This document shows positions 1-42,104 of a stretch of 64,000 bases of DNA, in pieces (the stretch's first letter is position 1; every line of letters begins with the position of its first letter). The DNA lies in the NCBI RefSeq assembly GCF_037042905.1, contig NC_087253.1:21018001-21082000 (forward strand), read 5' to 3'. The notes under the pieces were generated by a model. That model was not told where the DNA came from, made no database searches, and saw only the letters and a program-made list of their open reading frames with translations. Position numbers and translations under genes: made by a program. The DNA is from Lytechinus pictus (lineage: Eukaryota).

Positions 1-17
1 CTTTAATATAGACCTAC

Positions 18-195
18 CTCCTAATTCCACTTTGCATGTTTGTAGGTGTTTTTGGTGCATCCTGTGATATCTTTGACGTTGTCCATCCTCGACCCCATTT
101 CCTTTGTTGGGATGCTATAAACTGATGATGAATGCCCTTCAAATGCTCCTGAGGTGACAGCATTGTCGTCTTCCCTGGTTCACCATTTGAAATTT
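18..195 (-). CDS. STRA8-like HLH gene, exon after the HLH (EISNGEPGKTTMLSPQEHLKGIHHQFIASQQRKWGRGW...); gene continues beyond the window's left edge
   Basis: Acceptor cataacag| at 196, donor AG|gtaggt at 17. 178 nt, open in phase 1, matching the phase-1 end of the 76-nt exon upstream. Confidence 0.6.
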
Positions 196-906
196 CTGTT
201 ATGAATTAAATTATTACTATTACTCAAGAGATGCATTTGCACTGATTAAATGATAATAATAATATTAATATTATATATCATTATATCCATATCTTATAGG
301 ATGAATAGGGAAATGATCCCCCTAGGTTTTGGAAACTAAGGGGGTAACCGAAGAACTTCCAGTTCTCTGGTTACCTTAAGACCTGCAGTTCATAAATAGT
401 GTGTGAAGTAGCCCTACCAAATCTATGCATTACCACATATACATGTATATTCATGTATTTTCTCAAAACACAACACTTTCAATGGTTGCCAAATATAAAA
501 GATATATTTTGACCTTGTTTGCTGAGTGCCATTTGTAATTCATTTGATTAACAGTTCACGAATGAGTGAATAGGAATTATATTATTGTGTCATTGTAATC
601 TTCCGCAGTTGGCTTCAGGGGTGTGTTCATAAGATGAGGTAATAGTCTGAAGGACTCATCTCTCATAAAGTGGAAGAAAAGCTTTTGTGCAATCTAATCC
701 CTTTATAAAAGTGAGCATTACTGGCCCAGCACTAATAAATTTCTGACTTTTCTGTGTCATATATAGCTCCATGACCTATCCACACATATAAACCTTACAT
801 TCCGGATCATGTATTTTTATTAACTACTACTACTACTGTTAATTTGAGGGGATGGATTGGCTAAGTGTACGCCATCTAGGGTTCCATACATAGAAATGCT
901 TCCAGA

Positions 907-1123
907 CAGGGGCGGATCCAGGATTTTTTTCAAAAGGGGGGGCACATTTTCCCCCTTGAAGGAAAAATTTGACAAAAAAAAAAAAAAAAAAAAGGTCTTC
1001 ACTTTCGAAAGGGGGGGGGGGGGGCACACTTATATTTTAACTGCATTTTTGCATAACAAATTTTTATTGTGCCTCTCAAAGGGGGGGGGGGGACGGCTGT
1101 GCCCCCCCTTGGATCCGCCAGTG
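907..1123. mobile_element. hAT-type MITE (CAGGGGCGGATCC...GGATCCGCCAGTG)
   Basis: TIRs plus 8-bp TSD cttccaga/cgtccaga; family copies at 22288-22520 and 24300-24494. Confidence 0.8.
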
Positions 1124-1278
1124 CGTCCAGACAACTCTATCCAGCATGGCTATTGAGGCTCATGTCTTTTTTTAGAACAAAGTGGCCCGACTTCTCCCTC
1201 TTTTTGCTGTGCCCTCTTAAGGCTCCCAGAGAATAGTGAGATTTTCTATTAATCTTTACTGATAATGATCATACTTGC

Positions 1279-1354
1279 CTTTTGTTTGTTGCAGTGCTAC
1301 TAGAATACCCTCCAAGTATTTAATCCTCATATAGGACTCCTGCAAGATGGACTC
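1279..1354 (-). CDS. STRA8: STRA8-like HLH gene, helix-2 exon (ESILQESYMRIKYLEGILVALQQTK), GC-AG donor
   Basis: Acceptor tttttgtag| in phase 0, donor AAAG|gcaagt. Helix-2 pattern ILxxxxxxIxxLExxLxxL continues the HLH from exon 2135-2284. Confidence 0.65.
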
Positions 1355-1439
1355 CTACAAAAAAGACAATAATCAATAAATCAATTAAACAAAGCGAGTA
1401 AAATAGACACTTTAGTCTTCAGACCTAAAATGTTGTCAA

Positions 1440-1890
1440 ATTAAAAATTTTGTTCATTTGAATTAATAGAGAAAAATCAATTAAAAAAAATCTTTAAGAT
1501 CGGATGTACATTAAGAAAGTTATGACATTTTTAAGTTTTGCTTACGGTATTTTTCACAAAACAGTTATATGCACAACTTAGTGATATGCATATGAGAGAG
1601 TCAATGATGTCCCTCACTCACCATATTTTTTATTGATTGATTTGTATATTTCAATTTTTACACATTTGACAATAAGGACCAACTTTACTTTAATAACCAT
1701 ATACTGTTAAAATAATGGTAATTCCACATGTTATTAGGAGGAATAACATTTTGATTTACATGACAATGAGGAAAAAAACATAATTTTTCATATTTTATAT
1801 AATAAAATACAAAAGAAATAGTGAGTGATGTCATCAGTCTGCTCATTTGCACACCAATCAGGATGTGCATATAACTGTTTTGTGAGGAAA
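1440..1890. mobile_element. Partial Kolobok/T2-type MITE
   Basis: Interior homologous to 20584-21150 and 49168-49762. Confidence 0.65.
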
Positions 1891-2134
1891 AGAAAACCTT
1901 ATTTTGTGATAGATTTTGCAATAATATCCAGAATGTAATAGTAAGGCCTGCTGGGAGAACAGTTTTTAGAACTGAACTGGCTACCTTTGGTGAATATACC
2001 GTTATTACTGTTATCATTTTCATTACCTTTTAATTTTGTTTCCATTCCTTTATTCTTCTTCATCCATTTTCCCTGAAGTCAAATAATTTTTTCCCAAGCC
2101 CTCCTCTTACAGCTGTACACCCAATGTTTCTTAC

Positions 2135-2284
2135 CTTTGAAACCTTTTCCTGACTTCCTGATGCATAAACTTGCTCTTTGAGTAGATCAAATCCAGCACT
2201 GATGTTGGCCCGACATTTGGCATCAGACTCTCTTCGTTTAATCTTCTTATTTTCATCATTCTCCGGACTATCACATTGGCTACT
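2135..2284 (-). CDS. STRA8: STRA8-like HLH gene, basic/helix-1/loop exon (SSQCDSPENDENKKIKRRESDAKCRANISAGFDLLKEQVYASGSQEKVSK)
   Basis: Acceptor tttctttctcacag|, donor AAG|gtaag, 150 nt phase 0-0. RRxSxAKxRAxIxxxFxxLKxxVY...SK matches the recalled STRA8 HLH RRLSQARHRATLAALFNNLRKTVYSQSDLIASK. Confidence 0.7.
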
Positions 2285-2553
2285 CTGTGAGAAAGAAATC
2301 AGAGGGGTGTCATTTATCAATCTGAAAGTCATTCTTAAAAAAGAATTCTGTTCATAAAGAACAGACTGGAATATTGAAAATCAATCATTTTTTTTCAATT
2401 TGGCCATTTGTTTTTCCTATAATCTTCATTATAAAGCATGCCTCTTTCATCAATTTTTGGACGGCTTTTAAGCTTCACTCTAGATGGTTTTATACACCCA
2501 GCCCCTAGGAGTTTTGATAACAGAACCTCATTTTACAAAGAGCTATTACTGAT

Positions 2554-2714
2554 CAGGGGCCTGTTTCATAAAGAGTTGCAACTGTTGTAACTTTGCCATT
2601 ATGGCAACTACCATGGCAACAGGGCTTAACAGCCAATCAAAATCAAGGTTACCATGGTAGTTGCCATAATGGCAAAGTTACAGCAGTTGTAACTCTTTAT
2701 GAAACGGGCCCCTG
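2554..2714. mobile_element. Palindromic MITE (PIF/Harbinger-like ends) with central CCAAT
   Basis: About 60-bp inverted arms GGGCCTGTTTCATAAAG...CTTTATGAAACGGGCCC flanked by CAG/CTG; partial copy at 54678-54802. Confidence 0.75.
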
Positions 2715-3261
2715 ATCAATCTCAACTATGTCAACTAGGCAACTGATATGTGTTATCTACAGTAGATATTAAAGTATAGAGTATCGAAGTGGTGATGTCA
2801 CAATTTTTTTTTATTTCAGCATTTTTTATACCATATTCTGGTAGAGCATGATGAAACACTTCACTTTCAAAATTTGGTGAGAATTGGTCCATGGGGGCTT
2901 GAGATATTACCTCATTGGCCTGGTTCCTAACTTTTAGAACCAGGCCAATACATACATTGACTTCAATGGGGCTAATTATGTATTCATGAGGTCATACATG
3001 TATCTCCCACCAAATTTGGGTTGTGGGGGTTCTTCATCATGCTTTACCAAAATATGGTATAAAAAAGGCTGTAATGCAAAAAGTGAAAATTGATGACCTC
3101 ACACTTCAAATTGGAAGGTGTTTACAAACTCAAGTGTTTTTCATGAAAAATTAGCTCTTAACCAATCAGATTTTCACTATCTTATAACACTAGTTTTTTT
3201 CTTGATAGTACAGTGCATCATGGCCTAAAACACTTAAGACTTATCTTTAGTAGATATAGAG

Positions 3262-5883
3262 CATGATCGGTTAAGGGTTAGCATTGAGGTGAAATTTTTT
3301 AGGTATTTCTATCAAAATTGCTTTTAAAATAATCTTTGATATCTCAGGTTTCAAAGCACTTAGTTTAAGGAAGATTGATGATTCCGAAAGTACTGGAATA
3401 GTCCATTTTATTCATGGGGGTGCTGTTACCTCTCATCACGGACGGACATTTTTACTTAAAATAAATTCACTCTAGTTTTATGGTTTTTAAAGTTACTCTT
3501 ATTTGGTTTGGATGTTCTTGCACTCTGAACAGTAATCTATTATCAAACATAAAATAGTAGAAAAAAAATATTGGGAAGTAATTTTTTTGGTAGGTGTTAA
3601 CATTTCCATTTTGAAATTTCCGTCTGTGATGGGAAAAAAGATGAAAAGTTTTGTTATTCTTTATCAGAATTAAAATAAAAAATAAAAAGGTGTAGAGGTA
3701 TCTCACTAAACACTGTACATCATTTTATTTGAACATAGCTGAAATCCATACATTTTATCCATATCATAAACTCAATAAAAAATGATCACGGACGGACATT
3801 AATTTCATCACAGACGGACAAAGTAATTTCACTCAAATTCAATTCACTCTAGTTTTATTGTTTCCAAAGTTACTCTAATTTGGTTTGGATGTTCTTGCAC
3901 TCTGAACATTAATCTATCATCAAACATAAATTAGAAAAAAAAAATATGGGAAGTAAATCTTTCTGGTAGATGTTAACATTTCCATTTTGAAATTTCCGTC
4001 CGTGATGAAATTAATGTCCGTCCGTGATCATTTTTTATTGAGTTCATGAATGGATAATATGTATGGATTAAGTTTTTTATTCTTTATCAGAATAGAAACA
4101 AAAATAATAGTGTGTAGAAGTATGTCACTAGACACTGTACATCATTTTATTTGAACATAGATAAAATCCATACATTTTATGCATATCATAAATCAATCAA
4201 AAATGACCACGGACGGACATTAATTTCATCATGGACGAACAAGTGAGCAACATAAGCTAATACTGTGGAACGATCCATACACGCAAATGAGAAACTTTGC
4301 TGAGCAGATTATGAATTTAATTTTAGTTTCAATTTGCAGTGAAAAATGGCACTGAGAATTATTCAGAACTCAAATTGATGGAAACCTACAACTCTTCACA
4401 ATTTTTTGTGATATCTTTGTTTGGCTGTTATTGGGGGTTAATTGTTGTCAGGAAAAATTGTTAAACATAATTGGAATGCAGAATTGGGTAAGGGTTAGGG
4501 TTAGAATCTATGGAAAGCTACATGTATGCCAAAAAAGTAGGAAATAAAGTATGGCAAGAACAAGTCCAAAACTGTAGATTTCATCAATACAAGCTTGCAG
4601 AAAGTGATGTAAAAGAAGAAGGTAGAATGCATAATCTGATAAGCAGAAAAATCATCAATTTTTTCCATGTATAAATCTATGGATTCACAATGCTTCTAAC
4701 AGAACATGACACCACAGTCTTTAGGCTTGTGAAAAGTACAAGAATACCTTTTTTCAAAGTTCTTTTTTGCAGCTAATTTTATTAAAGCAAATTGCTTATC
4801 TGGTAAACTGTGAAAATGCATACTATTTATAAAGCTTGCACTACATTGTTTAGAAGTTTAATAAGTTTTTGATTGGTATATGATTTATCAATTTCAATTT
4901 TGGATACGGTCAGGGCCTAAATACATGAGGGTTGTTTCCCCTTTAATATGGACAAAAGATGAAAGCCTCTGACAAGTGTTGTGGTCATACTTGATCCACC
5001 AAACAAGCATAAGGATCAGCAACCTGTGAATCTTTTGAATTTAGTTAAGGAATCTAAAAGACATCTTTGCTCTGGAAAATTAATGCCTAAAAATGTATTA
5101 ACATGTATCATCATGATATATCATAAAATACTTGTATCAAGATTCAACATAATCATTGATCAACTAGATGTTGATTTGGTACCTACCAGTATTCTATCAT
5201 TTGAAAGAAGACAATGTGCATTAGGACATTCTTTACATTTGATTTTGACAAGAAATGTGTTTAAAGCAATCATATTTGCAGATTATACTGTGCGTCTAGC
5301 ATAGAAATCAAGTTGCTACAACTTAAATCAAGTTGTAGCAACTTGATTGAAGTTGTAGCAACTTGATCGTGCAACTATAATACTGTTTAATCATATTTAA
5401 AAATGTACAAATCATCAATACAATAGCATTTGTTCCCCCAAAATGTAATAACAACTTCTTACAAGGTACTTTCAATGTATTTTAATTGTGTCTGTCCGTG
5501 ATGGAAAATGTTTGCAATTCTCTCAGAAGTTTGATATTGGTTAATAATTCAATATGCTGAACATAGAAGCTAACATACCTGAGTATTAGTTGCATTAATA
5601 ATTATTGGTCAATGTTAAGCTATTTAGATAGAAACAATAAAAATGTACAAAATTCTGAAAACCACATTTCTATCATGTCCGTCCGTGATATGGCACATTA
5701 AGTGGATACCTATGTTTGTAGGTAACCATGGCCACAAACTTTTTTTATCATTCAGCATACTTGGTCCTACCCTTCACTATAAAACACAAAGGAACCTTGT
5801 TCATCTAATTCCTAATTTGTTACAAGCCTTCAAAATTTTCAAAATCTATCAAATGTCCGTCCGTGATGAACCGATCACGGGTA
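3262..5883. repeat. Probable non-autonomous DNA transposon with iterated TCACGGACGGACA motif and internal duplication
   Basis: About 10 motif copies in both orientations; 3465-3830 duplicated at 3843-4245; end similarity CATGATCGGTT / AACCGATCACG. Confidence 0.55.
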
Positions 5884-6543
5884 ATATGGAGGTCTTTAAA
5901 AAGTCAGTGATTTTCATCAATTAATTTTTGGCAAATCAAACTCATAAATTTTTGCTATCTTATAATATTTATCTTTGTTCTTGATAGTGCATCATTACTC
6001 ACATCATTGACATTTTTTGTTATCTTAATAAAGTATTGGTGAGATCTTCACAAAGTCGGTGTGTGAAATGTTCATTAATAACTTTAGCTCTTAATCGTAT
6101 TCATGAATTTTCACTACTTATCTTGTTACATAACATAAGGTTACATTAGGTTCAGTCCTATATGCAGGATCTTCTGTTTCTCTATTTTCAGCTCCTGGTG
6201 ATATACAGTGACGTCTGAAGAATTGGCGTGGTCCTGGGGAAGAACCTTGTAACACTTTATAGATCTATCTACATTCCTAATAGTGAAGTTATTTACAGTA
6301 GATATTTAATGGAGTGGAGCAAAGTACCAGTAGTAGGCCTATACATGTATGTTTGGACAAGGCTGCTTTTCATCATAGAGCATATTTCAATGTTACATTA
6401 AAAATGGGGAAAATAAAAAAGGCACAAAATATGATAAAGGGCACGGCAAATTAGAGCAGCATCAAGTTCAATCAACATGGTATCCAAGGCTTTCTAAGCC
6501 TTGATGACCTTGGAAAAATTTCAGCTTTACTTTTATGACTTAC

Positions 6544-6606
6544 CAATTCTGCTATTTGAAGCTGAGGCTCATCACTTGATGTGTCCATTCCTTCATGCTG
6601 GTCCAT
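6544..6606 (-). CDS. Probable first coding exon of the STRA8-like gene (MDQHEGMDTSSDEPQLQIAEL)
   Basis: Acceptor ttgatag| at 6612, ATG 5 nt inside, strong donor TTG|gtaagt in phase 0, compatible with exon 2135-2284. Confidence 0.5.
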
Positions 6607-7919
6607 AGTTGCTATCAAATACAATGCATGTGAAATATAATGATGAATTTATTTTTTATTTCTGGATAAAAATCGGTGGTCTAGGCTTAGATCTAATATC
6701 ATCTCCATTCAGATGTCTGTTTAATATATCTACTGTAATTCTAGATCTACATGTATTTAGTTAGAAATTCAATTTATAGACAGGAATAACCATCGTTTCT
6801 GGGGATTTATTCAACAATTTCTGATATTTTATTGTCATCCCCATGTATTGGTGAGCGGAGCAAATGTAGTTCAGCGGAAAAACCAATACGTTCGTTGTAA
6901 TAGAGACTGAAGGTTTTGGTCTATTTAATTCATCGACATCGTGCAGCAAATATTTTTAATTTGCAATTTTCATAGCCAAGCCCTGGGGTCCAAACGTTAC
7001 TAGATCTTTACCTTGGCTTTTCCTTTTAACTATAAACTTAGTTTTAGACCATAACTATTAAAGCAAGGTTCTTCTAAGTTTAAGATTTATGTTACTGTTA
7101 GACTAGATCTAACGTTAGATATAGAAGTAGCCTAGATCTAGTCTAAATTAATATTAGGATGATTTATAGACAGCTGCTGTCCGTTTGTTAAGAGGAGTTT
7201 AAAAAACTTTTGTGTTTTGTTTCTCCTATCCCCCCCTTGGCTTAACGTTAGATCTAGACCCAGGTACATGTAAGTTAGACTACGCAGTACGCTACGGCTA
7301 CGCAACAGATCTACTGCTAACGAGTCTTGGGCTCCGGCCCGCAAAGGCAAAGCGGGCAGTAGACAGGAATAACCGTCGTTTCTGGGGATTTATTCAACAA
7401 TTTCTGACATGGTGAGTGAGCCAACGCAGTTCAGCGGAACAACCAAAATACAGAGACTGAAGCTCCCTGGGTTAATCTAGATCTAGCCTAATTCACATAG
7501 CCATAGGCCTAGACCATACCCATAGATTAGTTCCAGTCACCTAGGCTAACAGTAACAAGTAAACATGATTAAATCAAACTTAGTCATAGATCTAACTTTT
7601 AGATCTAGGGCTAGGCCTAGGTCTGTTAGATCAGTCGCAAAGGCAAAGCAGGCAAGGACAATGTAATAGTGTAACTAAGTACCGTAAGTTAGGCATGGAC
7701 TTCCTTTTTCATGTTTTTTTTTGCTCCCGTGTCGCCGTTGACCATCTCTTTTTACAATTAGAAATTAAAGTCCAGTCTGTAACTTAATACTGGACATGAT
7801 CTAAAAAAGGGATCTAACATGTTACTAATTGGTAGGCCTTAAGGCTTAAGAACAAGATCTACCTCAAGTGATGTTCGTGTAGGCTCCACTCCACTTCAGT
7901 CTTCACTAGGCCCTAGTAT

Positions 7920-8392
7920 GGTAGTGGATCGTATTACCGAACACTTTTCATGAATTTGATCATATCAAACACATTATTCCAATAAAATTCACAAAACTTT
8001 CACCATAAATACACAAATACCTACAAAATATAAATATGCGGAAATTTTGCCGAAATTGTTTTTCGTTTTTCGACATCAGCTTCCAATCGGACCTCTCTTC
8101 GCAAGTGAAATATTTTGGTCACTTGAAAAAGGTATCGTATTACCGAACGTGTGTTTTCTATGGGAAAAGTTAGGAAAACAACAAAGTCACTGATGAGCTA
8201 TTTTGACCATATTTTATTGTTTTAGGATATAAAGACTTCGAAATTGTGTTTTTGATAATTTTTCATAATTTTTCTATTCAATTTCCCTTTGGAAGGATGT
8301 AGCAAAGGTTTGAGCATATTTGATTATTTTCTGACGCATATGACGTGCGCGTTCGGTAATACAAGGCCGGTCGGTAATACCATCACTCACTA
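7920..8392. mobile_element. MITE with GTATTACCGA(AC) inverted subterminal repeats
   Basis: Two forward copies on the left, two inverted TCGGTAATAC copies on the right. Confidence 0.55.
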
Positions 8393-8394
8393 TA

Positions 8395-11300
8395 CCGTAC
8401 GCTGCCCAATCGTCGCTCAGTTTACGTATTTTCCTTTATGTTTCATTCAATTAGCTATGATACCCTTACTTCTTTATGTCAACTGAAAGAGAAAATACTG
8501 GAAAATTGTTTCATAGGATAATAATTATATATCTTCAAAGCACCGCTGTGTAATTCTCCGTTTTCGGCACCCCTTGCGCCTGTCCCATTCGCCGCTCACC
8601 ACTGCCCTAACTCCGCTCACTTAGCGCGCGCATTCATACATGTAGTTTATAAGGCCTGATACTGTCTAACTCTTTTTTCTACCCTTTTTTCTTGCACTTC
8701 TGAGTGAGAAAGTGTGTAATTTTGTTGTGATTAAATGTATTGTTTACAAGTTTTATAGTACTATACACTGTATAAAATGTTTCTTTCGCCAAGTGCAATT
8801 ATTTTTAGGGCCTCAAACTTTTTGTTACTGATCTACGCCTATATATCATTTTTTGTTATCCTCCAAACATATATTCCGTATTTTTTATAAAATACATATT
8901 TTCAAAAAACCTTTCCCGACAAAATTTTAACTGATTTCAATTATCTAATAATATGAATATGATTCTAATCCATTCATGAATTTTATGAGTATATTATTAT
9001 TTATTTATTTATTTCGGAAATGAAAAGTATATGAAATTGGAACAATTAATGTAATACAACATTAACAGAGTATAGATTGAGCACCCACTGGGTCAAATAA
9101 ATTACTGTTGTCAATAAAGACCATGACCCTAACCAGTGCTATAATAAGGGTGCTTAAATAAAATCGGAAGTGGATAAAAGAGTCAGCATGAACAAAAATG
9201 TTTAAAGAACAATATATATAATATAATAACATGCTTGATATAGTTAAGTTAACTTAATTAACTTAAAATATCAATATTGATGAATCTACATTCTTATAAA
9301 TAAAACGCTATAAAGCTCTTTTAGCACATTCGCCATTCAAAGTAATCATTTTCGCCACTCATCCAACTTGAGTGCCCCCCCCCCTTGTTGTCCCTTCCGC
9401 TCATCGCCCCCTGATGCCATCGACCATTGATTTCCATTATTATTATTATTTTTTTTTGAAATAATTATTTGCATCCTCCTCCAAGTTCTAATTCAAATTT
9501 GTTGCTTTTACACTGTCTTGACTCATTATTTATCAAGTATGTATTCGTGTATCCCACTTTTTTGTTTACTCTACTTTTTCTTGTCGTATTGATATTTTAT
9601 GGGACTCTCACTGCATATTCGTATGTCTGTATTATCGATCATATTGAATATGTATTGTTACTTTGATTATATTTTGAAAAAATTGTTGAACGGAAATAAA
9701 ATCTAAATCAAAATCTAAATCTATTCTTTGGAGCCTTCAACCAACAAGCTTTGCTTTTACTTTTAGCTCCCTCATATCCACATCTCTCATTTTCTTTCTT
9801 TGTCATAATTTTAGAACCAATTACAAGAATACATTCTAGTACTTTTTTCTATTGTTATATTATGTATACATTTCATATTTTAACGATGTTTATTTATGCT
9901 TATCTATGAAAACTTGTATTGTATAATATTATTGTTTGTATTGAATTCTTGATTTTTTGAAAATGTGAAATGTTGATGTGCATAAACCTTGAGCCCTGAA
10001 CTCCGATAATATTTTTTGGGGATTCCCTTATATTGACTTTCATTAAAAAAAAGCTAATCTTGAAAAAAAAACAATAAATATTTAATCACCTCGCTGGTTT
10101 AAGTTCATATTCGAACTCCCATCAATAATATAGGAGAGGGGAAAAGGCACTCAAGAAAATTCTATTTGTTCAAAATAAATTGGTCAATTTAAATCCTGTT
10201 CCGTTTTCAAACAAAACACAATAAAAAAAGGAAATCTCCAGAAACATGACAAAGTTTCATCTATTCAAATCAATCAGGAAACTACTGACCGAGTTCAAAA
10301 GGCCTATATAGGCCCATTAGTGGGAGATTTTTTCTTATTTATTCATTTAAATTCTTTATTTTATTTAGATTTTTAGATATGAATCAGATAGGCATGCAGA
10401 TAATGCGTATGGGCCTAACATAAAATAAATGTATCATTAGGCTCATAAGTTATCACATATAGGCCTAATTACACATCTATTTGAGGTGACGTGTATAAAA
10501 TCCTTGTTTTATTCCAATTAAATTATCCATAAATTTCATACTCTGAGTAAATGATATTGGTTATCATCAAAATATGAATACGCCACATAAAAAAACCAGT
10601 ATTACGATCGATAATTGCCTAGAAGACATGCCAGGGGCCGCGGAACCGGGGGAGGGGCTTCACCCCAGAACAAAAAAAAACTATCCCTATATCTCCAAGT
10701 TGTTTGTACGTCGGTATTTAGTGATAAACATCGAAGTCTCATTTTTTAGCATTGATGACCCTACGATTCGTTCTAGAGCAAGATAATTTTTGTAAAACTT
10801 TTTCCCACACACTTTGGGCTGGGACAATGATTACAATTAAATCTCGAAATATTTCTGGTGAACAGTGACAAACTCTTTTGATCATCTTTCAACATTTCTG
10901 TAAACGTCAGCTTATCTGCCTGCTCCATGATAAATCGTGACCGAGGGGGTTTTATTTGCCGTCACCCTCAGCTAAAGGGAGAGAGAGGGGGAGATAGAGA
11001 AGCAATCATAGGAGAAGTGAGAGAGGAAAATGTAAAAGAGTAATAAAGAAGAAAAATGGCCGCGTCGCAAAAAAGACAACGGAAGAGGTATCAATCAAGG
11101 CCGGAATATAGGAAAATAATGAAATGAAAAAAAAAAATTAAGAGGAAGGAAGAAGACAAGACGAAAATGAGAGTTGGGGGACCGACAAATACCTGTACCC
11201 TTCATTTAGAACAAAATAACTATTCAGCCTGCGCTTCGCGCCCGCATTGCCCGTTTGTTTCATTATTCATGTCTTGTTTTCAAGTCATTCTCGGTTTGTA

Positions 11301-13042
11301 AGATAAAACATCATTAGAAAAGTGCTTAAAATGTCTCGTTTTTTTCTCTGAATCAGGGGCAGAAATCTCTCCCAAAAAGTAGGGGGGGGGGGGCAAGGGG
11401 CTGGAAAATTTGACAAGCAAAAAAAATTTGTTCATGAATTCATATGACACTCGATCTCTTTTCGATCTCTTTTAAGACTTATTTTATTATTCATGCATTA
11501 CAGTTATAATCTGCTCTAGCTAACATAATGAGCATAATAATATAGGCTGATCAATCGAGCTGATTTCTCTTAGAAAGTTGTACAAGCAAATATTACCACT
11601 ATTCTTATTGAAGCGATGTTTCTTATGAGGTAGGCCTATACTGAATTATGACCTGAAATAAATTCAGACATTCCTACATTGTTTACTCTTAATTTTCATC
11701 TCATATTAAATTCACGAGTTGAATTAGTAGAGTAATCAGGCGTTACCATGGCAACATACCATTACCATGCATTCAAATGAACTTATATCCATGCAGAACA
11801 CTCTGTTGTTTTCGATATTTAATTCAAATGAATTGGTCAAACCTATATAGATTTTGGCATTTTCATTGTCATTTTCCACCATTCATCTTTTCCCACCATA
11901 ATGTTGATTTATGATGGCAATTCAATAAATGCCCCCAACGTCATTGGCCAAAGTTAATTTACCTTAAATTACCTTTGACCGTGGCATGACCTGAAACTCA
12001 CTATAGGATTTTCACTGACTCCCTTATTTCTAAGTTTCATGATAGCTATAAAAACCTGTAGGCCTATTTCAAACTTATGATTACATTTCACAAACTTATC
12101 CTGTTTTAAGATTTCAATGTTTACGACGCCGCCCGCGCGGCGCCGTCGGAAAAAGCGGCGCCCTGTCTCTGCAGGCAATCAAGACAAAGTGTATTTTTCT
12201 GCGGGAAAGATAAGCCGTTACCATGGCAATGGATCTTTTGCAAATACTTTGATGACTTGATAGGACTATATCTAGAAATTGAATTTGGAAGGCTTAAGAA
12301 TGATAGATTGGACCATTTAAATTGACAGGGTAATGTGCCATATAATATATATAGGCTCGATATGTTATTTTTTTTAAACATATTAATCAGTTGCCATGGC
12401 AACGGCGGAAGGAGGCATTTATGAAACTGGCAACAAGCGGATTCATGTTCAGCACCATCAAAATAGAGGAAATGACACAAAAAATCAGATTCTAAAGAAA
12501 AGTCTACTTGAAAAATTATGACAATTCCGTTTAGGCCCTATACTCTTACAATGATTATCATACACAATCAGGGTGAGCGGAGTTAGGGCAGGCTGCTATC
12601 TCAAGGTATGCCCTCGCTAATTCATTCACACAACAAATATTCATTCTAGAAAAATTTGTCATGACGACATATCAGGACCTCCCGCACCTACGACTCTCAC
12701 ATTTTCATTCATCATATAAAAATATAACATTTTTCACTGTTTTTAGGAGTTTTAAAAGTGATTGAAAAAAAACGTAATTTGGTGCAGTTGCGGTACAGTT
12801 GATCGAAGTTCAAACAGTTATCGGGTTACTTTACATTTAAAGCAGTATATCACGATGATTTATTAAGGGATTGATTTTATTTTTCCACACTTGGTTTTTT
12901 CATGTAATGGTCTCCTCTTGGCTGCTTAATTATGCGAGTATACTAAACAATAAGGAATTTGGGACGAATTTAAAATGATAATCATAATAAGCAGCGTGCG
13001 CATCGCGCTTGTGAGGGTGAGCGAGAATTGGGCAGCGTACGG
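8395..13042. mobile_element. 4.65-kb non-autonomous TA-flanked DNA transposon (Tc1/pogo-like CCGTA ends)
   Basis: TA-CCGTACGCTGCCCAATCGTCGCTCA ... TGAGCGAGAATTGGGCAGCGTACGG-TA; subterminal CCGCTCAC repeats at both ends. Confidence 0.75.
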
Positions 13043-13432
13043 TACCGGTAGTGGCGGTACCGGTAGGATGGGGGATCGGGTGTCCGGACACTTTATATTT
13101 TTGAAGCCTTCTTTTTTTGTCTTAAGACTACACTAAAAATATGAATTCAATAGTTGTAATCATCTTCTATTTTGTTCTCTATAATATTTTCTAAAATTTT
13201 GTACTAAAATTTGATGAAACTTCGCTTGTAATTTTTTCCAAATGACTTTCTAAAATTGATCGTCCGGACACACAACCTGTCCGGACACACAACAACTGGG
13301 TATACCGCTAGTGTAGGCAGCGCGCGGTACCGGTGGCGGACTAGTGAAGTGGAGCCTACACCGTACACGAACTAACGTTAAATCTAACGTTAGGCCTTAA
13401 CTTGATTTATTTGCTATTTCATTTTCACTTAC

Positions 13433-13583
13433 CGTAGCAGTTTCGCTGTCTTTATTTCTTTGTTCTGATTCCTGGCCCGATTTTCAGCTAGCGATCGAGA
13501 GATCCGTGGCTAGATCGACGATCTATATCTTGCACTTTTGCAGTTGAAATTACAATTTGCCACAAAGGCATAGCGCATGCGCA
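13433..13583 (-). promoter_or_regulatory. Candidate promoter plus non-coding first exon of the - strand HLH gene, with an NRF1/P3A2-type GCGCATGCGCA site
   Basis: Consensus donor CG|gtaagt at 13432, locally CpG-rich, NRF1 palindrome at 13573-13583. The link to the gene is inferred. Confidence 0.3.
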
Positions 13584-13886
13584 GTATATAGCTTTGACCA
13601 ATTGAAAAAAAAAAGCAACCGTATTTTTGGTCACATTGGCCCGAATTCACAAAAGAAGTTTAAACCATGGTCGAGGTTTAAACTTTTTTTGTGAATACGG
13701 GCCATTAGGCCTATATTATAAATATAGTTCCGCGCAAGCTAGTGCTACATGGGCCTAGCTTAACCTGGGAGCGTTTCATCATTCATGTATGTTAAGTTGT
13801 CTGAAAACATCTGAAAACTTAACTTGATTCTGATTGGCTGAGAGGCACTGTTACTATAGTAGTTGTCGGATAGAACGTCCGACCCC

Positions 13887-14945
13887 GGGGGGGGGGGGGG
13901 GGTAACTCTCCACATGGACTGCTATACCCACCCGTGTCCGACAACCTCAGAAATGCACCCTAAATGGCTTAACTACATTAACTAAATTTGCAACCCTAAA
14001 TGGCGTAACCCATGAGAAAAGCCACCCTAAGTGGCGTGAACAGGGAAATCCTCTAATTTGATATACCCTAAGTGGCAGATCGAAATCGATTATACTGATA
14101 ACTGATGCTAAAAACAACAGGTATATAAATTCCATTTTTTTAAGTTACTGAAATTGAAAGTAAGACCAACGTGATTACTCTCATGGACACCCCTAGCCAC
14201 TCTGAATAGCCATATCTTTTAGCCTAAATTAATGAATAGGCCTACAAGTGAAAAATGTTGCTTGCCTTGACTGACTGATGCATCACTTGGATCTAGAATT
14301 CATTTTACAAATTTTATCATATCTTGAAAAAATTGAATCCATTCCAGTTAATAGTTTTGCATTACTTGAACCTATATCTTCTTTTTTATTTTGTTTTTAT
14401 TGATAATAAAAAGCAAATCAATATACAGTATGAATCAATCAAAAAAGAGAAAAAACAAAAACCCAGCATTACCAACATTTCCCCTTTACATGTAGATCTA
14501 CAGGTATTCATTCAAGTAAAGTAGTAAACTTGTATCTAGCTAGGACTGTAGGCCTACGGGGGTAACTCTCATAAGTGCTGCGCTGGCCGGCGTGCCGGTG
14601 CGAGGATTATTTTGTATCCCTTAAAATCACGCCCTTCATGGTGTTTATGGCTAAGGTTTGCTCTCGGATCTCCTTTTGCCCAAACTTGCAACCCTAAATG
14701 GCGTAGATCTACTCAAATTTGTACCCATAAGCTCCATAACCAAATTAGTAACCCTAAATGGCGTGAAGAGCGAGAGAAAAAGCTATACCCTAATAGGCGA
14801 TTTATCAGCTAAGGGTGCTAAATGGCTACCCTTTTTGCTAAAGACATCGACGACGCCTGAGTGCCCGAAACTGGACCCTTTTTCGACGCTTTTTCTGGAC
14901 GCGGGTGCGTAGCAGATGTGGAGAATGATCCCCCCCCCCCCCCCC
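13887..14945. mobile_element. Poly(G)/poly(C)-ended inverted-repeat element with iterated ACCCTAA(A/G)TGGC motif
   Basis: G-run..CTCCACAT / ATGTGGAG..C-run ends; about 7 motif copies; splits a Harbinger-like MITE. Confidence 0.55.
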
Positions 14946-16182
14946 ACCGAGCGCCCGACAACCCCTTTCATGGAACGTATGTTACATAATGAGTCAGATC
15001 AAAGGAAACTTTTACAGCTATACCGTTATGCAACTTGATCCTACAACAAGGGCCGAGGGCCAGGCGCACCGGAACACTTTTTAGTATCATTTTATTTATT
15101 TATTTATTTATTCTTATTATTTGAGAGCAAGAACATGCTTTTTCCTCGACATTTCCCCCGATCGGCCGCTTTGAAGTTTATTTTTTTATTTTTTTTGCTG
15201 GTTTTTTTAAGGCTCTGAGGGGACACTCCTATAGAATCTAGACTGGACTGAAGGTTTAGCTAGGACCTAAGTACATCTGAGCTCATAATTTCTACAAACA
15301 AGATAAGGTTGGCCTATAGGCCTACTATCTCATAAGGTCATTTCAATTAAAAATATTACGTGATAAGTCACTGCGAAGGGCTATACTCATAATTTATGAA
15401 AACTTGCCTAAAAACCTATTCCAGGGTGCTGAGAACGATTTTGAAATTAAGGGGTGCTGGGCTGGGTGTTTTGTTAGGAGGTTGTCGTCAGACTGAATGT
15501 GACAAGCGTCCCCCCCCCCGAATTTTTCTAAGGGTATTTCTCCAAAATATATCATGCAACATATTTTTTTTTCTTTTTGCTTGTCAACCTGGTTATAAAA
15601 AATACTTGTATTCGAAGAACGCGATGCCATACCATCTATAGGCCTATACGCTCTTAATTTAGATCTACTTACAAGCCTTGACCCGAGTCAGCCAGGATCG
15701 AAAATCTCACATTTTTCAGTTATAAAATCGACAATTTTAGACAAGAAAGGTGTCATTATTTTTTTTTTGTCTTTAAGTAATTGATTAGTTTTATCACTTT
15801 TAGGGGGCACATGGGACCAAACCTTTTGTCCCCTCCCCCACTTCCGGCGCCCCCGCCCAAAGTTAAACAAATGTCAGCTCATGCAACTTTTATGTAGCTA
15901 CTGTGTAGGTGACATTATGTGGCATTATGTGTCGACTGACATAGTATAATTTATAATTGTATGAAATTTTACCCCTCAGTTAATTTTTATTCTTTATAAT
16001 TATATTGTGTTCAGTTTTGAGTCGGATTGTGTTCTTAATTAATAGGATTATTTGAATTTACACACATGATTATCGACCCGTATTAAAGTATTATTCGCCG
16101 ATTATCTCTATATTCGTAATGGTGTTTTCACTTTCAGTTTCTTTGTTGTTCTTTTACTGAGATATCTTGTACTATATACTCT

Positions 16183-17942: not shown

Positions 17943-18129
17943 GTAAGAAACTCACCCTTTCACAGTAAGAATACAACCAAGAAGTACGGTAGTGAGCAAA
18001 CCTTTTCGAGCGGCGGGGAGAAGTCATGACGTCTGGCTAGAATTTGTCAAAATCTGCGAGAACAAAATTTTTGACCTCATTTTTTCAATATAATAATTTT
18101 GTGATAGATTTTAGCGTAATATTTAGAAA

Positions 18130-18703
18130 NNNNNNNNNNNNNNNNNNNNNNNNNNNNNNNNNNNNNNNNNNNNNNNNNNNNNNNNNNNNNNNNNNNNNNN
18201 NNNNNNNNNNNNNNNNNNNNNNNNNNNNNNNNNNNNNNNNNNNNNNNNNNNNNNNNNNNNNNNNNNNNNNNNNNNNNNNNNNNNNNNNNNNNNNNNNNNN
18301 NNNNNNNNNNNNNNNNNNNNNNNNNNNNNNNNNNNNNNNNNNNNNNNNNNNNNNNNNNNNNNNNNNNNNNNNNNNNNNNNNNNNNNNNNNNNNNNNNNNN
18401 NNNNNNNNNNNNNNNNNNNNNNNNNNNNNNNNNNNNNNNNNNNNNNNNNNNNNNNNNNNNNNNNNNNNNNNNNNNNNNNNNNNNNNNNNNNNNNNNNNNN
18501 NNNNNNNNNNNNNNNNNNNNNNNNNNNNNNNNNNNNNNNNNNNNNNNNNNNNNNNNNNNNNNNNNNNNNNNNNNNNNNNNNNNNNNNNNNNNNNNNNNNN
18601 NNNNNNNNNNNNNNNNNNNNNNNNNNNNNNNNNNNNNNNNNNNNNNNNNNNNNNNNNNNNNNNNNNNNNNNNNNNNNNNNNNNNNNNNNNNNNNNNNNNN
18701 NNN
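18130..18703. other. Assembly gap
   Basis: N run. Confidence 1.
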
Positions 18704-20583: not shown

Positions 20584-21150
20584 TTAAAGGTCAAGTCCAC
20601 CCAAGGAAAATGTTGATTTGAATAAATAGAGAAAAATAAAACTAATATTACGCTGAAAATTTCATCAAAATCGGATGTAAAATAAGAAAGTTACGCATTT
20701 TAAAGTTTCGTCTATTTTTCACAAAACAGTGATACTCAGTGACATGCAAATGAGTCAGTCGATGATGTCCATCACTCACTATTTCTTTTCTTTTTTATTG
20801 TTTGAAATATACAATATTTCATTTATTACAAATTTGACAATGATGACCAACTTGACTGAACCATTCAGTATCAAACAATGCTAATTCCACATGTTCAGGG
20901 AGGAATTAATCATTGTTTTACTCGACAATGAGAAGAAAATTAGAATATTTCATATGTCATATAATGAAATACAAAATAAATAGTGAGTGGATGACGTCAT
21001 CAGTCTCCTCATTTGCACACCGACTCGGGACCCGGGATGTGCATATAACTGTTTAAGTGAAACTTTAAAATGTCATAACTTTCCTATTTTACATCCGATT
21101 TTGATGAAGTTTTCCGTGTTATGCTTGTTGGATTTTTCTCTATTTGTTCA
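20584..21150. mobile_element. Kolobok/T2-type foldback MITE, right end truncated
   Basis: TTAAAGGTCAAGTCCACCC start and inverted arms. Confidence 0.75.
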
Positions 21151-21767
21151 AAGGTTTACCTTACTTTCTCAACGACCTAGATCAAACAGATATCAAGTTG
21201 AATGCAACCCTTACAGTTGATTGACAAGTTTAGATGTATTATATCATCCCACACTCATCTGCAAGAATCAGATCAGTAATCAATTGGAAGACATTGACAT
21301 GTGATTTCATTTTCTAAAATCTTATTGTTCATGATAATGAATCAAATTTTGAAACCCATCTACCACCCCTGTCCCACCTGCCTACCACCCCCTTGTGTAT
21401 TAATTCAGTAATATATTCAGCGATGCAATGGTTTTTATTTCAGTCAATTTTGATCTACCACCTCGGGATTTTCATTGTTACTCAATGTCGTGTGCATTCG
21501 GCTGGAATTATGTATTTTAGTAGGCATCAACGATGTATTTTTGTTTAATTATTTTAATTGGTCAAATTCATCGAGCTTTTGATCAATCTTCATTCATTTA
21601 TCAATTAGGTCATATAAAGGCTGTTGTACACCATGGTCTTCAATACCATTAAAACAAAAACACTCCCCATAATACCGTAAATTATCAAAAAAAAATATTT
21701 TGTTCGTAATATACAGTAGACTTTATGTTACAAGGTAGTTGGCAGGAAAGCAATCTTTTTATCGCGA

Positions 21768-22130
21768 TAATAAATAATAATAATAATAATAATAGCCAAT
21801 TTTTATAAAGCGCTTTTCCCAGAATGGCTCAAAGCGCGTTACAGCATATTATTACCCCGGTCATTGGATTCATTTCAATCCCGCACGAAAAGTGCACAAT
21901 TTCCACTCCCTGGGGAGCATTCCTTGCATTCATCGCAGCCTCATTATGGCGCTGGCAAAATCAAACATACAATATCTTTCGCATCCTACCGGGTACCCAT
22001 TTAGCACCTGAGTCGAGAGTGGCAAAGTGTGGATTAACGCCTTGCCAAAGGACGCTAGACCGCGGTGGGATTCGAACACATGACCCTCTGTTTACAAGGC
22101 GAGAGTCAGAACCACTACACCACGGCTCTT
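21768..22130 (-). mobile_element. tRNA-derived SINE, full length
   Basis: A box TGGTGTAGTGG, B box GTTCGAATCC, central CAGGTGCTAAATGGGTACC domain, L2-like tail and (TAT)n. Confidence 0.85.
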
Positions 22131-22287: not shown

Positions 22288-22520
22288 CAGGGGTGGATCC
22301 AGGATTTTTCCCGGGGGGGGGGGGGGCATTTTTGTCCAATTTTTTCGACAAGCCCCTCCCCCAATAAAAACGTCTTCAAAATGTCATTAACGGCACGAAA
22401 AATTGACAAGCAAAACCCCCCAAAAGGTCTTCACTTTGCACACATACACACAAAATGATGTATTGCTTTCAAGGGGGGGGGGGGCGCATGGGCCGGATGT
22501 ACCCCCTGGATCCGTCACTG
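22288..22520. mobile_element. hAT-type MITE, same family as 907-1123
   Basis: CAGGGGTGGATCCAGG...CCTGGATCCGTCACTG; TSD-like atgtgagc/atataagc. Confidence 0.7.
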
Positions 22521-23344: not shown

Positions 23345-23992
23345 GATGATGATGTAGAATATTCAAGATTTATCGTGATATCGGACAGCGATAAAGCTGA
23401 CTTTAGCTGCCTGCTCGACATTGAACCATTTCGATCAACGATAGTAACCAACTCTTTGAGAGCAGTGTATATTCATAACAAGAACATAGGCCTGTAGCGC
23501 TGGTACATATATTCTTTAAATCATTTTTTTGGGTCGTCTATATTTGATTTAACAAGACGTATACTGTACTCGAATTAGCAAAGAATCATATTCATGTAGG
23601 TTTACTCTAATTGAGTCTGGAAAGTATAGGCCTACTCTTTCACGGGGAACAAAATTTTTCATACTCGACAAATACCCTTTCATATTTCAATCATTCATTT
23701 GCAGACTAAAATGACTTGCAAAATGAAAAACAGTTATGACGACAAAAGCGGACTTATGTTTTAATGCCATTTAAATTTATGTTATCTTAATTTATCTTAT
23801 TGATCTAATGTTTATATTAATGATTTTTTTTTTAATGAGAGAACTTTTTATTAGGAACTTTGGTACCTTTTGCTATCCCTGGCCTCTGGTCGATTGGTCT
23901 TTCAATTTTATTGTACTCACATTTTCTTGTATTGCTTCTGCTAGAAATGAAAAAAAAAACAATAGTAATAATGCGGATATAAAAAATCGTCT

Positions 23993-24066
23993 TCATCATC
24001 ATCGTTATCGTCATTATCATCATCATCATCATCATCATCATCACCACCATCATCATCATCATCATC
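23993..24066. repeat. (CAT)n microsatellite
   Basis: Read directly. Confidence 0.9.
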
Positions 24067-24089
24067 CCATAGTTGCATTAGTAGTATAA

Positions 24090-24257
24090 TACCTCAGTCA
24101 CATTTACTCATTTACTGTACGGCGGCCGTATCCGGCGAGTCGAAAACAACCGTTTTAACATGTTTTGTACCAGCTATAGTTTTACATAATATAAAACTGA
24201 AAAAAATGTTGTGTTCGACTCGCTGTACGCCACCATATAGCAAATGTGACTGAGGTA
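24090..24257. mobile_element. MITE with TACCTC(A/G)GTCA termini
   Basis: Long inverted arms; second copy at 33208-33375. Confidence 0.7.
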
Positions 24258-39000: not shown

Positions 39001-39480
39001 TTGGCTACTTACAATGTCTGTAGAAGATGTATCTACAGTGTTTTTCTTTGCTCTTTTGTTGACGTTGTCTGCAGTCGTTGACTTCCTAAGCTCCTTCCTC
39101 TTCCTGGTTCCTTTCCTTATTGCTGCTGTTGATCTTGATGCTGACGTATTCTCGGGTACCTGTAGGGATGGCAACAAAATCTCCGGTGGATTTTTAGCAC
39201 CCCTGCCACTCTGTTGCCATTGGGCAGCCGCCGGGACTCGGGGCCTAAGCCTAGGTTTGTCTTTCATGGTAGGTTTTGTAGGAGTTATGACCTGGATGGT
39301 GAAGCTGGGCACATGGTCATTGACTTCCCAGCCTGAGCAAGATGTTCCGCTTTTATAAAAAAGGAGGTGGTCACCACCCTCCCCCTAGTGGTTTGTTCGG
39401 GTTTACCTTCCCTGCCCAGAGCCCCTGTCTGTTACCCCGGCTGCAAAGCCAGGGATATCCAGTTGGTAGCAGCAATGAGG
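36021..39480 (-). mobile_element. RTE-clade non-LTR retrotransposon, near full length, frameshifted (APE + RT)
   Basis: SLGTWNVRTM, VQVYAPT, MGDFNAKVG, NYRAITLLS, DFKAAFD, GVRQGCLLSP and YADD split over several ORFs; TAAGTCAA tail. 5' boundary approximate. Confidence 0.9.
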
Positions 39481-40035: not shown

Positions 40036-41147
40036 CTTGCGGAAATAAAAAGAAGATAATTATTACCACGGGCGTAAATCTAATCCGGGAGTTGGCAGTA
40101 TAGAAGGGGGGTATCATAATACGCCCGTACTGTAGACTGTCATTATTTCGATTCTAATCTTATGGAACACTAACGTCAGTAAACCGATTCCAGACCATGT
40201 GATAATTCCATAAGAAATGGGGGGGGGGGGGGTTATATATGGATTTCTTTTTTGGAACCACGGTGCTCTTTCATTCATAAAATGTTAGAATGTACTTTTT
40301 GAAAAAAATATGTATAATAATGTACTTTAAAAAATGATAAAACATAAATTTCATTCGTCATTTTCTTTTATATTACACTTTTTTGTTCTCGGGAAGAAAA
40401 AGAAATCATGGTACATCTCTAATGTGTGTGTTTCTGCATGATCAATTTTGGAATTGGTCGAAAACCACTGCTGTTACAATATTTCAGAACTTACAAAATT
40501 AATCTAAGCTGGATTGATTTTGTTAGTGTCAACATGGTGGTCTATGATGAAAGGGGCATATCATTTGGGGCACGATTTAGATAATTTTTTACCATGATTA
40601 TTCTCGGCTGACACTATACTAAGACAAGGCCAATTGTGGCTTGACTATCATCCAGTTGCGACCAGCTATCATGTCAGCTATAAGTATCTACTTTAATATT
40701 TCGACTAATAGACCCTTCATATGGTTGCCTGTTATCATGGCTACTTATTACTATCTTTCTCCTATATCCTATCGAAGTGTTACATATAGACATTATAGAC
40801 GTTTATGATCGGACCATTGAGTTGTATCACTTTCATCATGACCAAGTAATGATACATAAACATTTCTGGACCCGTGCCCTCACACACGTACAATAATACA
40901 CAAACACTCATATCCAATCCAATCCAACACACACATACACACCCACACACACACCCTCACACGCCCTAAGTCGAAAAAAAAAGTCCATGAATTAAATATA
41001 GCTAGATACAATGCAAAAGAAAACAAGACTTGCCCATCTTACATGTACACACGGCTATCAATAATGGGAAATCCTCTTTAATTTTGAAATGGTTATTTCT
41101 ATCTTAGCTTTTAGCTTGTTCCCTTAATATTGAGTGTGTATATTTAC

Positions 41148-42104
41148 CTGTAAGTACTCCAGAAGCAAAAAAAGAGGCCCCGGTTACCATCAGGGAGCAA
41201 GCAATGGCCTTTGGGAAATTCTCTTTCCGGACCTTCAAAGAAATAACTCCGTCTAATGTTGCATATGCATTGTAGAAACCCATCCCGGCGAGAAAGGAGC
41301 AGATGCATAGATAGGTCGGAGAAGAATTGATAGGATACACCAGGAGCGATATGGATGATATCAAGAGGCTTGTTGGCAGCAATGGTATTGTTAACAATGG
41401 GTACTTATACAGAGATGCTACGAGGAAGAGTCTTCCGATGATGCCGCCAACGGAACCCATCATGACTAAGAACACGGCTGTGTTTTGGGGTAATCCTTCG
41501 GCTAACCCGTAGGGGAACAGAAACACTGACCAACCCATGTACGACAGGTCGAAAAAGACCTGGCATGGAAGTAGAAGGCATGCAAAAACGCGTTCCTTTT
41601 TAACAAAATCTAGGGCATCAAGCATGGTGTTTCGGATCATGCTGAACATTCCTTCTCGAAGATTTGGGCTTTTCTTCATCTGTCCAGTGTTTGGATCAGA
41701 CTGTAAATCTTGGGGGCTACTCGCTGTGGCTGTTATTTCGTTGCTCTGAAGCTGATCATCGTTCCTAGTTCGAAGTGGCACACGTTCGCACCCGGCGTCA
41801 TCACTGTCGTTCCCTGTAGACAGTTCAGACAAGGATGTTCCACTTTCAGATTGGCATTTCGGCATGTTCGGAGAGGAACGCAGCGTTGCTCCTATTGGTA
41901 CCCAATGAAACATCATAGCGCTAAGGATCAAGAAGCTCCCTCTCGGCCCATAGGCATCCATACTCATCGAGGTCAGGTATGGCATTACGAAAGTCCCAAT
42001 TTGACTCCCCATCTTCGTGATTGCCGAAGCTAATCCGAAATTGTCTCTGTGATATTGGTAAAGCACTTCACTCGATCCTTGGTTCAACGGGGAAGCGAAG
42101 AGAC
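41148..42104 (-). CDS. SLC16/MCT-like gene, exon 3
   Basis: ccgtag|, 957-nt open exon with several TM helices and a large polar central loop, G|gtaaat. Confidence 0.9.

Follow-up and report, generated by a model that had tools for sequence, protein, structure and literature searches.

When the STRA8–MEIOSIN meiotic-entry switch arose is an open question. The latest comparative study of the two proteins covers vertebrates only and calls for the inclusion of more distant species (PMC13637641). The literature we searched contained no report of an echinoderm STRA8, and a literature string search with STRA8 peptide text returned nothing. Against this background, we examined a 64,000-nucleotide stretch of Lytechinus pictus DNA (hereafter the window), in which a first-pass annotation had proposed a spliced, STRA8-like helix–loop–helix (HLH) gene from a sea-urchin-like genome. 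The spliced HLH gene is real, and the locus offers a concrete and testable invertebrate candidate. L. pictus is a laboratory sea urchin. If the gene were a STRA8 pro-orthologue, the STRA8 arm of the switch would be older than vertebrates, dating back at least to the deuterostome ancestor, and would become open to genetics in this species. Kinship with STRA8 would also make it possible to test for an ancestral coupling to retinoic acid or RB; should that kinship fail, the locus would still hold an unnamed, conserved and atypical bHLH protein.

A spliced gene with an atypical HLH domain

Reading the window DNA, we found four minus-strand exons that splice in frame, at the coordinates and with the peptides given by the first-pass annotation; the first three are joined identically in the NCBI model XP_063960465.1 (P0001). 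Exon 1 (6544–6606) begins with an ATG at 6606–6604 and encodes, in 21 codons, an acidic N-terminus identical to residues 1–21 of XP_063960465.1; its donor is TTG/GTAAGT. Exon 2 (2135–2284, 50 codons) lies between the acceptor ...TCACAG and the donor AAG/GTAAGA and encodes an acidic stretch, the basic region (2204–2248), helix 1 (2162–2203) and the loop (2135–2161). The intron that follows is in phase 0 and starts directly past KVSK, and the end of exon 2 after KVSK or RVSR is common to three species. Helix 2 is supplied by exon 3 (1279–1354), which is entered through the acceptor ...TTGTAG and comprises 25 codons plus one nucleotide. An Rfam search over window positions 1–9000 gave no match.

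The product of exons 2 and 3 matches the Pfam HLH profile PF00010 above its gathering cut-off of 20.7 bits, with 26.2 bits for P0001 and a range of 26.2–27.8 bits for the urchin domain. The match covers profile positions 13–53 only, and because the alignment starts at position 13, the canonical basic region is missing, as the first-pass annotation had stated. Arg, Asp and Cys occupy the canonical His, Glu and Arg positions; the residue at the E-box-reading Glu position is hence Asp, and the ERxRR signature is absent. An AlphaFold2 model (pLDDT 82) features a helix at residues 7–41, a loop and a second helix at residues 50–73. The above-threshold score and this predicted fold place the domain in the generic HLH family. 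Right after helix 2 the protein continues with EISNGEPGK, which contains Gly and Pro and forms no leucine zipper. In searches for wider relationships, phmmer against the PDB retrieved no solved canonical bHLH, just chance matches to designed repeat proteins; Foldseek with the AlphaFold2 model against Swiss-Prot yielded nothing usable; and the ESM Atlas returned generic HLH clusters only, with none for STRA8 after PF00010 clusters had been set aside.

Resemblance to STRA8 and to Mondo/Mlx-type domains

P0001 matches the Pfam family bHLH_STRA8 (PF23175) at 21.7 bits (E 2.2e-4, profile positions 13–76 of 80), which is below the gathering threshold of 25 bits and below its own generic HLH score; fragments reach 15.4–17 bits. 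The basic region together with helix 1 carries the signal. A slice containing these two elements matches PF23175 only, at 15.8 bits (17 bits in P0003), and the same signal is present in a 60%-identical relative. A slice spanning helix 1, the loop and helix 2 matches only the generic profile, indicating that helix 2 is generic rather than STRA8-like. All three known members of the urchin gene's own family match the STRA8 model and none of Pfam's other special bHLH models. In contrast, 0 of 7 canonical bHLH controls, including MondoA and Mlx, match PF23175; these control sequences, entered by hand and checked by their PF00010 scores only, match PF00010 over its full length at 48–69 bits. The controls also cross-match the special models INO2 and INO4, to which they do not belong, at up to 21 bits, so a match of about 21 bits is by itself no proof of membership.

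The human STRA8 HLH string that the first-pass annotation had quoted proved to be a good STRA8 bHLH, scoring 129 bits on PF23175, far above the 21.7 bits of the urchin protein. On PF00010 it scores 16.7 bits over positions 13–53, and the generic profile thus starts to match at position 13 in both proteins. BLASTP gives a 53-residue alignment of the string with the urchin peptide at 38% identity (28.9 bits; 37–38% over the domain) and pairs KRRESDAKCRANISAGF with RRRLSQARHRATLAALF; the shared STRA8 pattern described earlier is present in this alignment. In both proteins the bHLH is N-terminal, and both carry the basic region RRxSxA(K/R)xRAx(I/L)xAxF, which lacks the E-box Glu and ERxRR. The urchin basic region is therefore non-canonical in the manner of STRA8. 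Beyond the bHLH nothing similar is detectable: no STRA8-profile match lies outside it and none reaches exon 4. The likeness previously drawn between LKGIHHQF of exon 4 and LEEVKKEY of STRA8 has no profile support and was rejected.

In an eight-member panel, again with hand-entered controls, the urchin domain and STRA8 are each other's best match at 28.5 bits; STRA8 scores 11.9–23.1 bits against the remaining members, and the urchin domain scores 26.6 bits against MondoA and 23.5 bits against Mlx. A small tree (9 taxa, 58 columns) pairs STRA8 with the urchin domain with a support of 69/86, both on long branches. These sequence comparisons suggest that the urchin HLH domain may be closer to vertebrate STRA8 than to the other families tested; as the match lies below the family threshold, a pre-vertebrate STRA8 is a good lead but no more. 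That the gene is a pro-orthologue within the STRA8 family is plausible, if somewhat short of an even prospect. What stands of the proposed STRA8-type factor is that STRA8 is the only special model matched and the best match in the panel; that such a factor predates vertebrates is a hypothesis, because the score is sub-threshold, MondoA is near, the tree is weak and the match is limited to the bHLH.

By analogy with STRA8, the protein would dimerize via its HLH, and the conserved non-canonical basic region may serve nuclear import, binding of a non-E-box site, or both. STRA8 is described as working in this way, paired with another bHLH protein, for example MEIOSIN, and the urchin protein could function as a bHLH of the same type. 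We consider it evenly balanced whether the locus as a whole is to be read like this, that is, as the 5′ part of a genuine L. pictus gene under selection whose N-terminal atypical bHLH works in the STRA8 manner.

The STRA8 likeness could instead be convergence between two divergent, fast-evolving domains. The gene would then encode a lineage-specific orphan echinoderm bHLH that stems from group B (Mondo/Mlx/Max-like) and whose basic region degenerated independently, and a role in meiosis would not be needed. We give this explanation serious weight, a little under even. The MondoA and Mlx panel scores fit it, as do the sub-threshold STRA8 match, the cross-matches of similar size between unrelated special bHLH models, the generic character of the helix 1–loop–helix 2 slice and the purely generic clusters of the protein-feature search. 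By our own reading of the sequences, the urchin domain also shares RxNIxxGFDxL in helix 1 and KVSKxxxLQ at the transition from loop to helix 2 with MondoA, and these stretches are similar in the MondoA/ChREBP–Mlx proteins. The narrow set of recovered members fits as well: an exhaustive phmmer search with the 50-residue exon 2 peptide, run over 1.84 billion representatives, recovered P0001, P0002 and P0003 alone, all apparently echinoderm-like, and did not retrieve STRA8 at E 1e-3. Word-indexed searches with P0001, alignment A1 and the exon 4 open reading frame added no further relatives. However, MondoA/ChREBP–Mlx proteins have a canonical H..E..RR basic region, match PF00010 over its full length at 55–60 bits, do not match the STRA8 model and extend helix 2 into a leucine zipper. 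In the urchin protein, Asp replaces Glu, Cys replaces Arg and Gly/Pro comes directly past helix 2, and PF00010 positions 1–12 are unmatched; the protein thus lacks both the H-x3-E-x2-RR signature and the leucine zipper of the Mondo/Mlx/Max group. The specificity of the STRA8-model match for all three family members and the failure of phmmer to retrieve a solved canonical bHLH also speak against an orphan group-B origin. Moreover, the STRA8-like part is the basic region, which defines the DNA-reading class and is invariant (KxKRRESDAKCRAN) in three species, as seen in P0001, P0002 and P0003.

Extent of the gene

The junction between exons 3 and 4 is absent from XP_063960465.1, which NCBI lists as the 103-residue 'uncharacterized protein LOC135155438' and which consists of exons 1–3. 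The NCBI model reads through 1256–1278 on the minus strand, completing the split Gly codon (first base at 1279) and adding six codons before the stop TAA at 1258–1256. The C-terminus is therefore ...QQTKGKYDHYQ, and the gene ends at L001:15351, which is window position 1256. In the four-exon model the same segment is part of intron 3 (196–1278, minus strand), a GC–AG intron that contains a poly-C/poly-G/poly-T low-complexity repeat. Its donor, AAG/GCAAGT, is a perfect GC-donor consensus located right behind helix 2. The first-pass annotation had not mentioned that this donor is of the GC type. A GT donor 4 nucleotides farther downstream was rejected, because splicing there would meet a stop codon within exon 4.

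Exon 4 (18–195, minus strand, 178 nucleotides) is entered in phase 1 through the acceptor ...TAACAG and stays open up to the donor GAG/GTAGGT. Its 3′ half, from about 121 to 18, is the first copy of a 251-bp tandem repeat that extends past the start of the window. The junction with the next exon, at L001:18480, is in frame; beyond the GC donor, six junctions are phase-compatible, and 589 codons run without a stop. NCBI assigns this region to a separate gene, whose 719-residue product starts at the exon 4 ATG (163–161).

This arrangement makes it most likely that the HLH gene extends beyond exon 3, and the GC–AG intron probably leads into the next NCBI gene; the current annotation has probably missed this intron and truncated the gene. 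The NCBI structure may still be right, a tentative prospect in our estimate. The HLH gene would then stop after exon 3 and encode a protein of about 100 residues that is barely more than a bHLH, possibly a small dimerization partner or modulator, and the 719-residue protein would be an unrelated neighbor. This alternative concerns gene structure only and fits either family assignment. It agrees with the two separate NCBI products, and no transcript-derived protein fusing exons 3 and 4 occurs in the protein collections searched. The exon 4 frame is open for just 14 codons upstream of the ATG, a length that makes it weak evidence by itself. On the other hand, intron 3 opens with a perfect GC-donor consensus and the stop of the NCBI model comes seven codons past it, which is the picture expected of a model that missed a GC–AG intron. 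The exon 4 acceptor is usable, lies 33 nucleotides upstream of the ATG and has the right phase, and the two NCBI genes share a strand and are separated by 1.1 kb.

Taken as a single gene, the locus would encode a product of about 825 residues (the sum of 106 residues and the 719-residue NCBI model), with the bHLH followed by a Ser/Pro-rich, probably disordered region. This region would carry NLS-like basic clusters, SIM-like motifs and an acidic LVCDE, a motif of the RB-pocket-binding LxCxE type. In the downstream NCBI gene, it is exon 6 (L001:20782–20896) that encodes the LVCDE with its acidic flanks, and the motif is relevant only if the GC–AG junction is real; we estimate a chance occurrence of about 0.035 for this composition. 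In vertebrates, STRA8 has a conserved C-terminal LXCXE that binds RB (PMC10600341). The urchin motif, in contrast, would lie mid-protein, and the putative full protein would be twice the size of STRA8 (about 390 residues in vertebrates, a length based on a mouse antibody entry that reads 'a.a. 1-393'). That the locus is a single gene and an echinoderm STRA8 pro-orthologue, combining an N-terminal STRA8-type bHLH with a candidate RB-binding LxCxE, is a minority prospect, and we propose it tentatively. Retinoic-acid response elements (RGKTCA direct repeats, DR0–5) are absent from window positions 1–16000, which does not exclude regulation by retinoic acid. As to MEIOSIN (BHMG1), the bHLH-HMG partner of STRA8, its conserved core is the HMG box. 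This bHLH protein of the germline contains long non-globular stretches (PMC13637641). The 719-residue product has no Pfam domain on record, and Pfam detected none in the six downstream exons that could be read.

Conservation of the bHLH exon

Exon 2 aligns from acceptor to donor with a second urchin (Logan contig L002), whereas the introns do not align. Over codons 13–50, which encode the basic region, helix 1 and the loop, the changes relative to L002 are 14 synonymous and 2 non-synonymous, corresponding to a dN/dS of 0.026 at a dS of about 1.1. Given this low ratio and the conservation of exon 2 up to both splice sites between unalignable introns, the exon is truly coding and its conservation is more than chance. 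A chance open reading frame or decaying pseudogene that merely resembles an HLH, as the weak database footprint, the 'uncharacterized' label and the repeat-filled introns might suggest, is extremely improbable: it is ruled out by the dN/dS value, and the above-threshold Pfam HLH match and the confident helix–loop–helix model likewise contradict it.

A conserved helix-loop-helix gene on the minus strand

All four exons that the first-pass annotation had assembled into a STRA8-like helix-loop-helix (HLH) gene on the minus strand (window 18-6606) were confirmed, in coordinates and in translation. Exon 1 (window 6606-6544) begins with an ATG, and its donor is GTAAGT. Exon 2 (2284-2135) lies between an acceptor ending in TCACAG and the donor AAG/GTAAGA, exon 3 (1354-1279) between TTGTAG and AAG/GCAAGT, and exon 4 (195-18) between TAACAG and GAG/GTAGGT. 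The donor of intron 3 is thus GC rather than GT, a point absent from the first-pass annotation, and fits the donor consensus at all other positions. An alternative GT donor four bases further on was rejected: it shifts exon 4 out of frame and leads to a stop.

The locus is a real gene. In a second sea urchin, represented by the 1.1-kb Logan contig L002 (run SRR28370583), exon 2 alone aligns with the locus, from the conserved acceptor TTTCTCACAG to the donor AAG/GT; the introns on either side do not align between the two. The 38 codons compared, which span the basic region, helix 1 and the loop, differ by 14 synonymous and 2 non-synonymous changes (dN/dS 0.026, dS about 1.1). A family member from a more distant relative (P0003, from an ENA assembly) is 60% identical to the part of exon 2 that it matches, and its KxKRRESDAKCRAN is unchanged. 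Similarity breaks off where exon 2 ends, after RVSR, and a valine follows, which would fit a GT donor there. The gene encodes a conserved HLH with an invariant, non-canonical basic region. AlphaFold2 predicts helices at residues 7-41 and 50-73, separated by an 8-residue loop (mean pLDDT 82).

Relationship of the domain to STRA8

Exon 2, used as query in an exhaustive phmmer search, retrieved a 103-residue Lytechinus pictus protein identical to exons 1-3 (P0001; NCBI XP_063960465.1, 'uncharacterized protein LOC135155438'). P0001 passes the generic HLH model PF00010 (26.2 bits, threshold 20.7), but the match is confined to profile positions 13-53, showing that a canonical basic region is absent. 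On PF23175, the bHLH_STRA8 model, it scores 21.7 bits (E 2.2e-4, profile 13-76 of 80), below the threshold of 25. A slice comprising the basic region and helix 1 matches the STRA8 model only (15.8 bits; 17 bits for the corresponding part of P0003), and a helix 1-loop-helix 2 slice matches the generic HLH model only (27.8 bits). All three urchin family members match the STRA8 model and no other special bHLH model. The human STRA8 string given in the first-pass annotation proved to be a faithful STRA8 bHLH (129 bits on PF23175); its PF00010 match is truncated in the same way as that of the urchin domain (16.7 bits, profile 13-53), and BLASTP aligns it to P0001 with 20/53 identities (28.9 bits).

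As controls we used seven canonical bHLH domains of the MondoA, Max, Mad, Mlx, SREBP, MyoD and Pho4 types; their sequences are approximate, but all seven matched PF00010 over its full length at 48-69 bits, which validates them. None of the seven matched PF23175, indicating that the STRA8 model does not draw ordinary bHLH domains. The controls do cross-match the special models INO2, INO4, ILI, SAC51 and LHW at 12-21 bits, so a sub-threshold match of 21 bits is no proof of membership. As a useful calibration, these small special models, among them the fungal INO2 and INO4, often give sub-threshold scores to canonical animal bHLH domains that are not members.

In BLASTP against the urchin domain, STRA8 scored 28.5 bits, followed by the approximate controls MondoA (26.6), Mlx (23.5), Max and SREBP (21.6 each), MyoD (20.8), Mad (18.1) and Pho4 (11.2). 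With STRA8 as query, the urchin domain (28.5 bits) likewise exceeded every control (11.9-23.1). A maximum-likelihood tree of 9 sequences paired the urchin domain with STRA8 (ultrafast bootstrap 69, SH-aLRT 86), and is exploratory because both branches are long and only 58 columns were available. A phmmer search of all PDB sequences, which we assume cover most canonical families, found no bHLH with the urchin domain as query; Foldseek and ESM Atlas searches were uninformative.

STRA8 is described as a vertebrate gene that diverges very fast, with less than 30% identity between fish and tetrapods. A 2013 paper suggested, from a weak neighbour-joining tree, that cephalochordates share its origin (PMC3668142), and the literature searched holds no report of an echinoderm STRA8. 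The STRA8-type reading is partly supported: like STRA8, the urchin gene carries its bHLH at the N-terminus, with a basic region of the STRA8 type, but its domain stays below the quantitative threshold of PF23175. Given this combination and an exploratory tree, we file the gene as a new bHLH-superfamily member working like STRA8; that it is akin to STRA8 is a tentative possibility. What the locus offers is a worthwhile lead, cheap to test, and not a discovery.

The domain would dimerise via its HLH. It probably does not read the canonical E-box, because an aspartate stands in place of the contact glutamate and ERxRR is absent. By analogy with what is described for STRA8, the basic stretch may instead serve nuclear import, an alternative DNA site or both. 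No retinoic-acid response elements of the DR0-5 type were found in window 1-16000, which neither supports nor excludes induction.

The exon 3-exon 4 junction and the downstream exons

The fetched locus L001 (GCA_037042905.1, chromosome CM073234.1) is identical to the window at every base and extends beyond its start. The NCBI model joins exons 1-3 and then splits the locus, so these exons are independently supported, whereas the exon 3-exon 4 junction is not. The model reads on past exon 3 for seven codons and meets a stop within intron 3 (window 1258-1256). A second NCBI gene has a coding sequence beginning at an ATG within exon 4 (window 163), and for its 719-residue product no Pfam hit is recorded. 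We lean towards a single gene comprising exons 1-3 and this downstream gene, on four points: a perfect GC-donor consensus sits exactly where helix 2 ends, an in-phase acceptor precedes the NCBI start codon by 33 nt, and the two NCBI models share a strand and are spaced by 1.1 kb. Against this stand the NCBI split itself and the finding of no fused product in any collection searched.

Exon 4 chains to six more exons (L001:18480-18820, 20782-20896, 21555-21792, 22418-22512, 23814-24095 and 24504 to about 24730), with AG/GT at each junction and compatible phases. The chained reading from the exon 1 ATG is open for 589 codons and is consistent with the second NCBI gene up to the end of L001. Its downstream part is rich in serine (13%) and proline (11%), and carries NLS-like clusters (AKRRRPKHKPLKK, KKR, QKRIK), SIM-like stretches (IVYV...SDEEVIDLL) and an acidic LVCDE motif (SPDLVCDEEPTSWPEDD); no Pfam domain was found in the downstream exons read. 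The C-terminal LXCXE of STRA8, conserved in vertebrates, binds RB (PMC10600341). If the long form is real, LVCDE could dock on RB-family pockets; by our post hoc estimate, a sequence of about 820 residues with such a composition would contain one LxCxE by chance with a probability of ~0.035.

Repeats and other features of the locus

Part of exon 4 looks repetitive, because its 3' half belongs to the first of 3-4 copies in a tandem repeat with a 251-bp unit (L001:16486-17257; window 121-1, then past the window start). The exon's donor site and the beginning of intron 4 are also part of this copy. In copy 2 the frame stays open and the GT donor is retained, and the later copies lack the 5' half of exon 4. 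A portion of the unit is found again 1 kb beyond, so it derives in part from a dispersed repeat.

About 270 nt before exon 2, intron 1 holds a near-perfect palindrome that resembles a small MITE-type element (window 2550-2718; arms of 71 nt with 94% complementarity, spacer of 27 nt). The same intron has a tandem duplication of about 380-420 bp (window 3450-4237) with a recurring GTCCGTCCGTGAT motif. One intron of the downstream gene contains a tRNA-like sequence (GCGTAGCTCAGTTGGTTAGAGCG...GGTTCGAGTCCCGC; L001:23240-23330), probably a tRNA-derived SINE. A run of N at window about 18100-18700 is an assembly gap or masked. LINE-type retrotransposons are represented on the minus strand by long ORFs that carry endonuclease and reverse-transcriptase motifs (window 36500-39400, 43200-46300 and 58100-61900), and a hAT-like transposase ORF lies at window 53146-54087. 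At window 41104-42123 (minus strand), a 339-residue open frame resembles a large exon coding for part of a membrane protein of the major-facilitator type (monocarboxylate-transporter-like).
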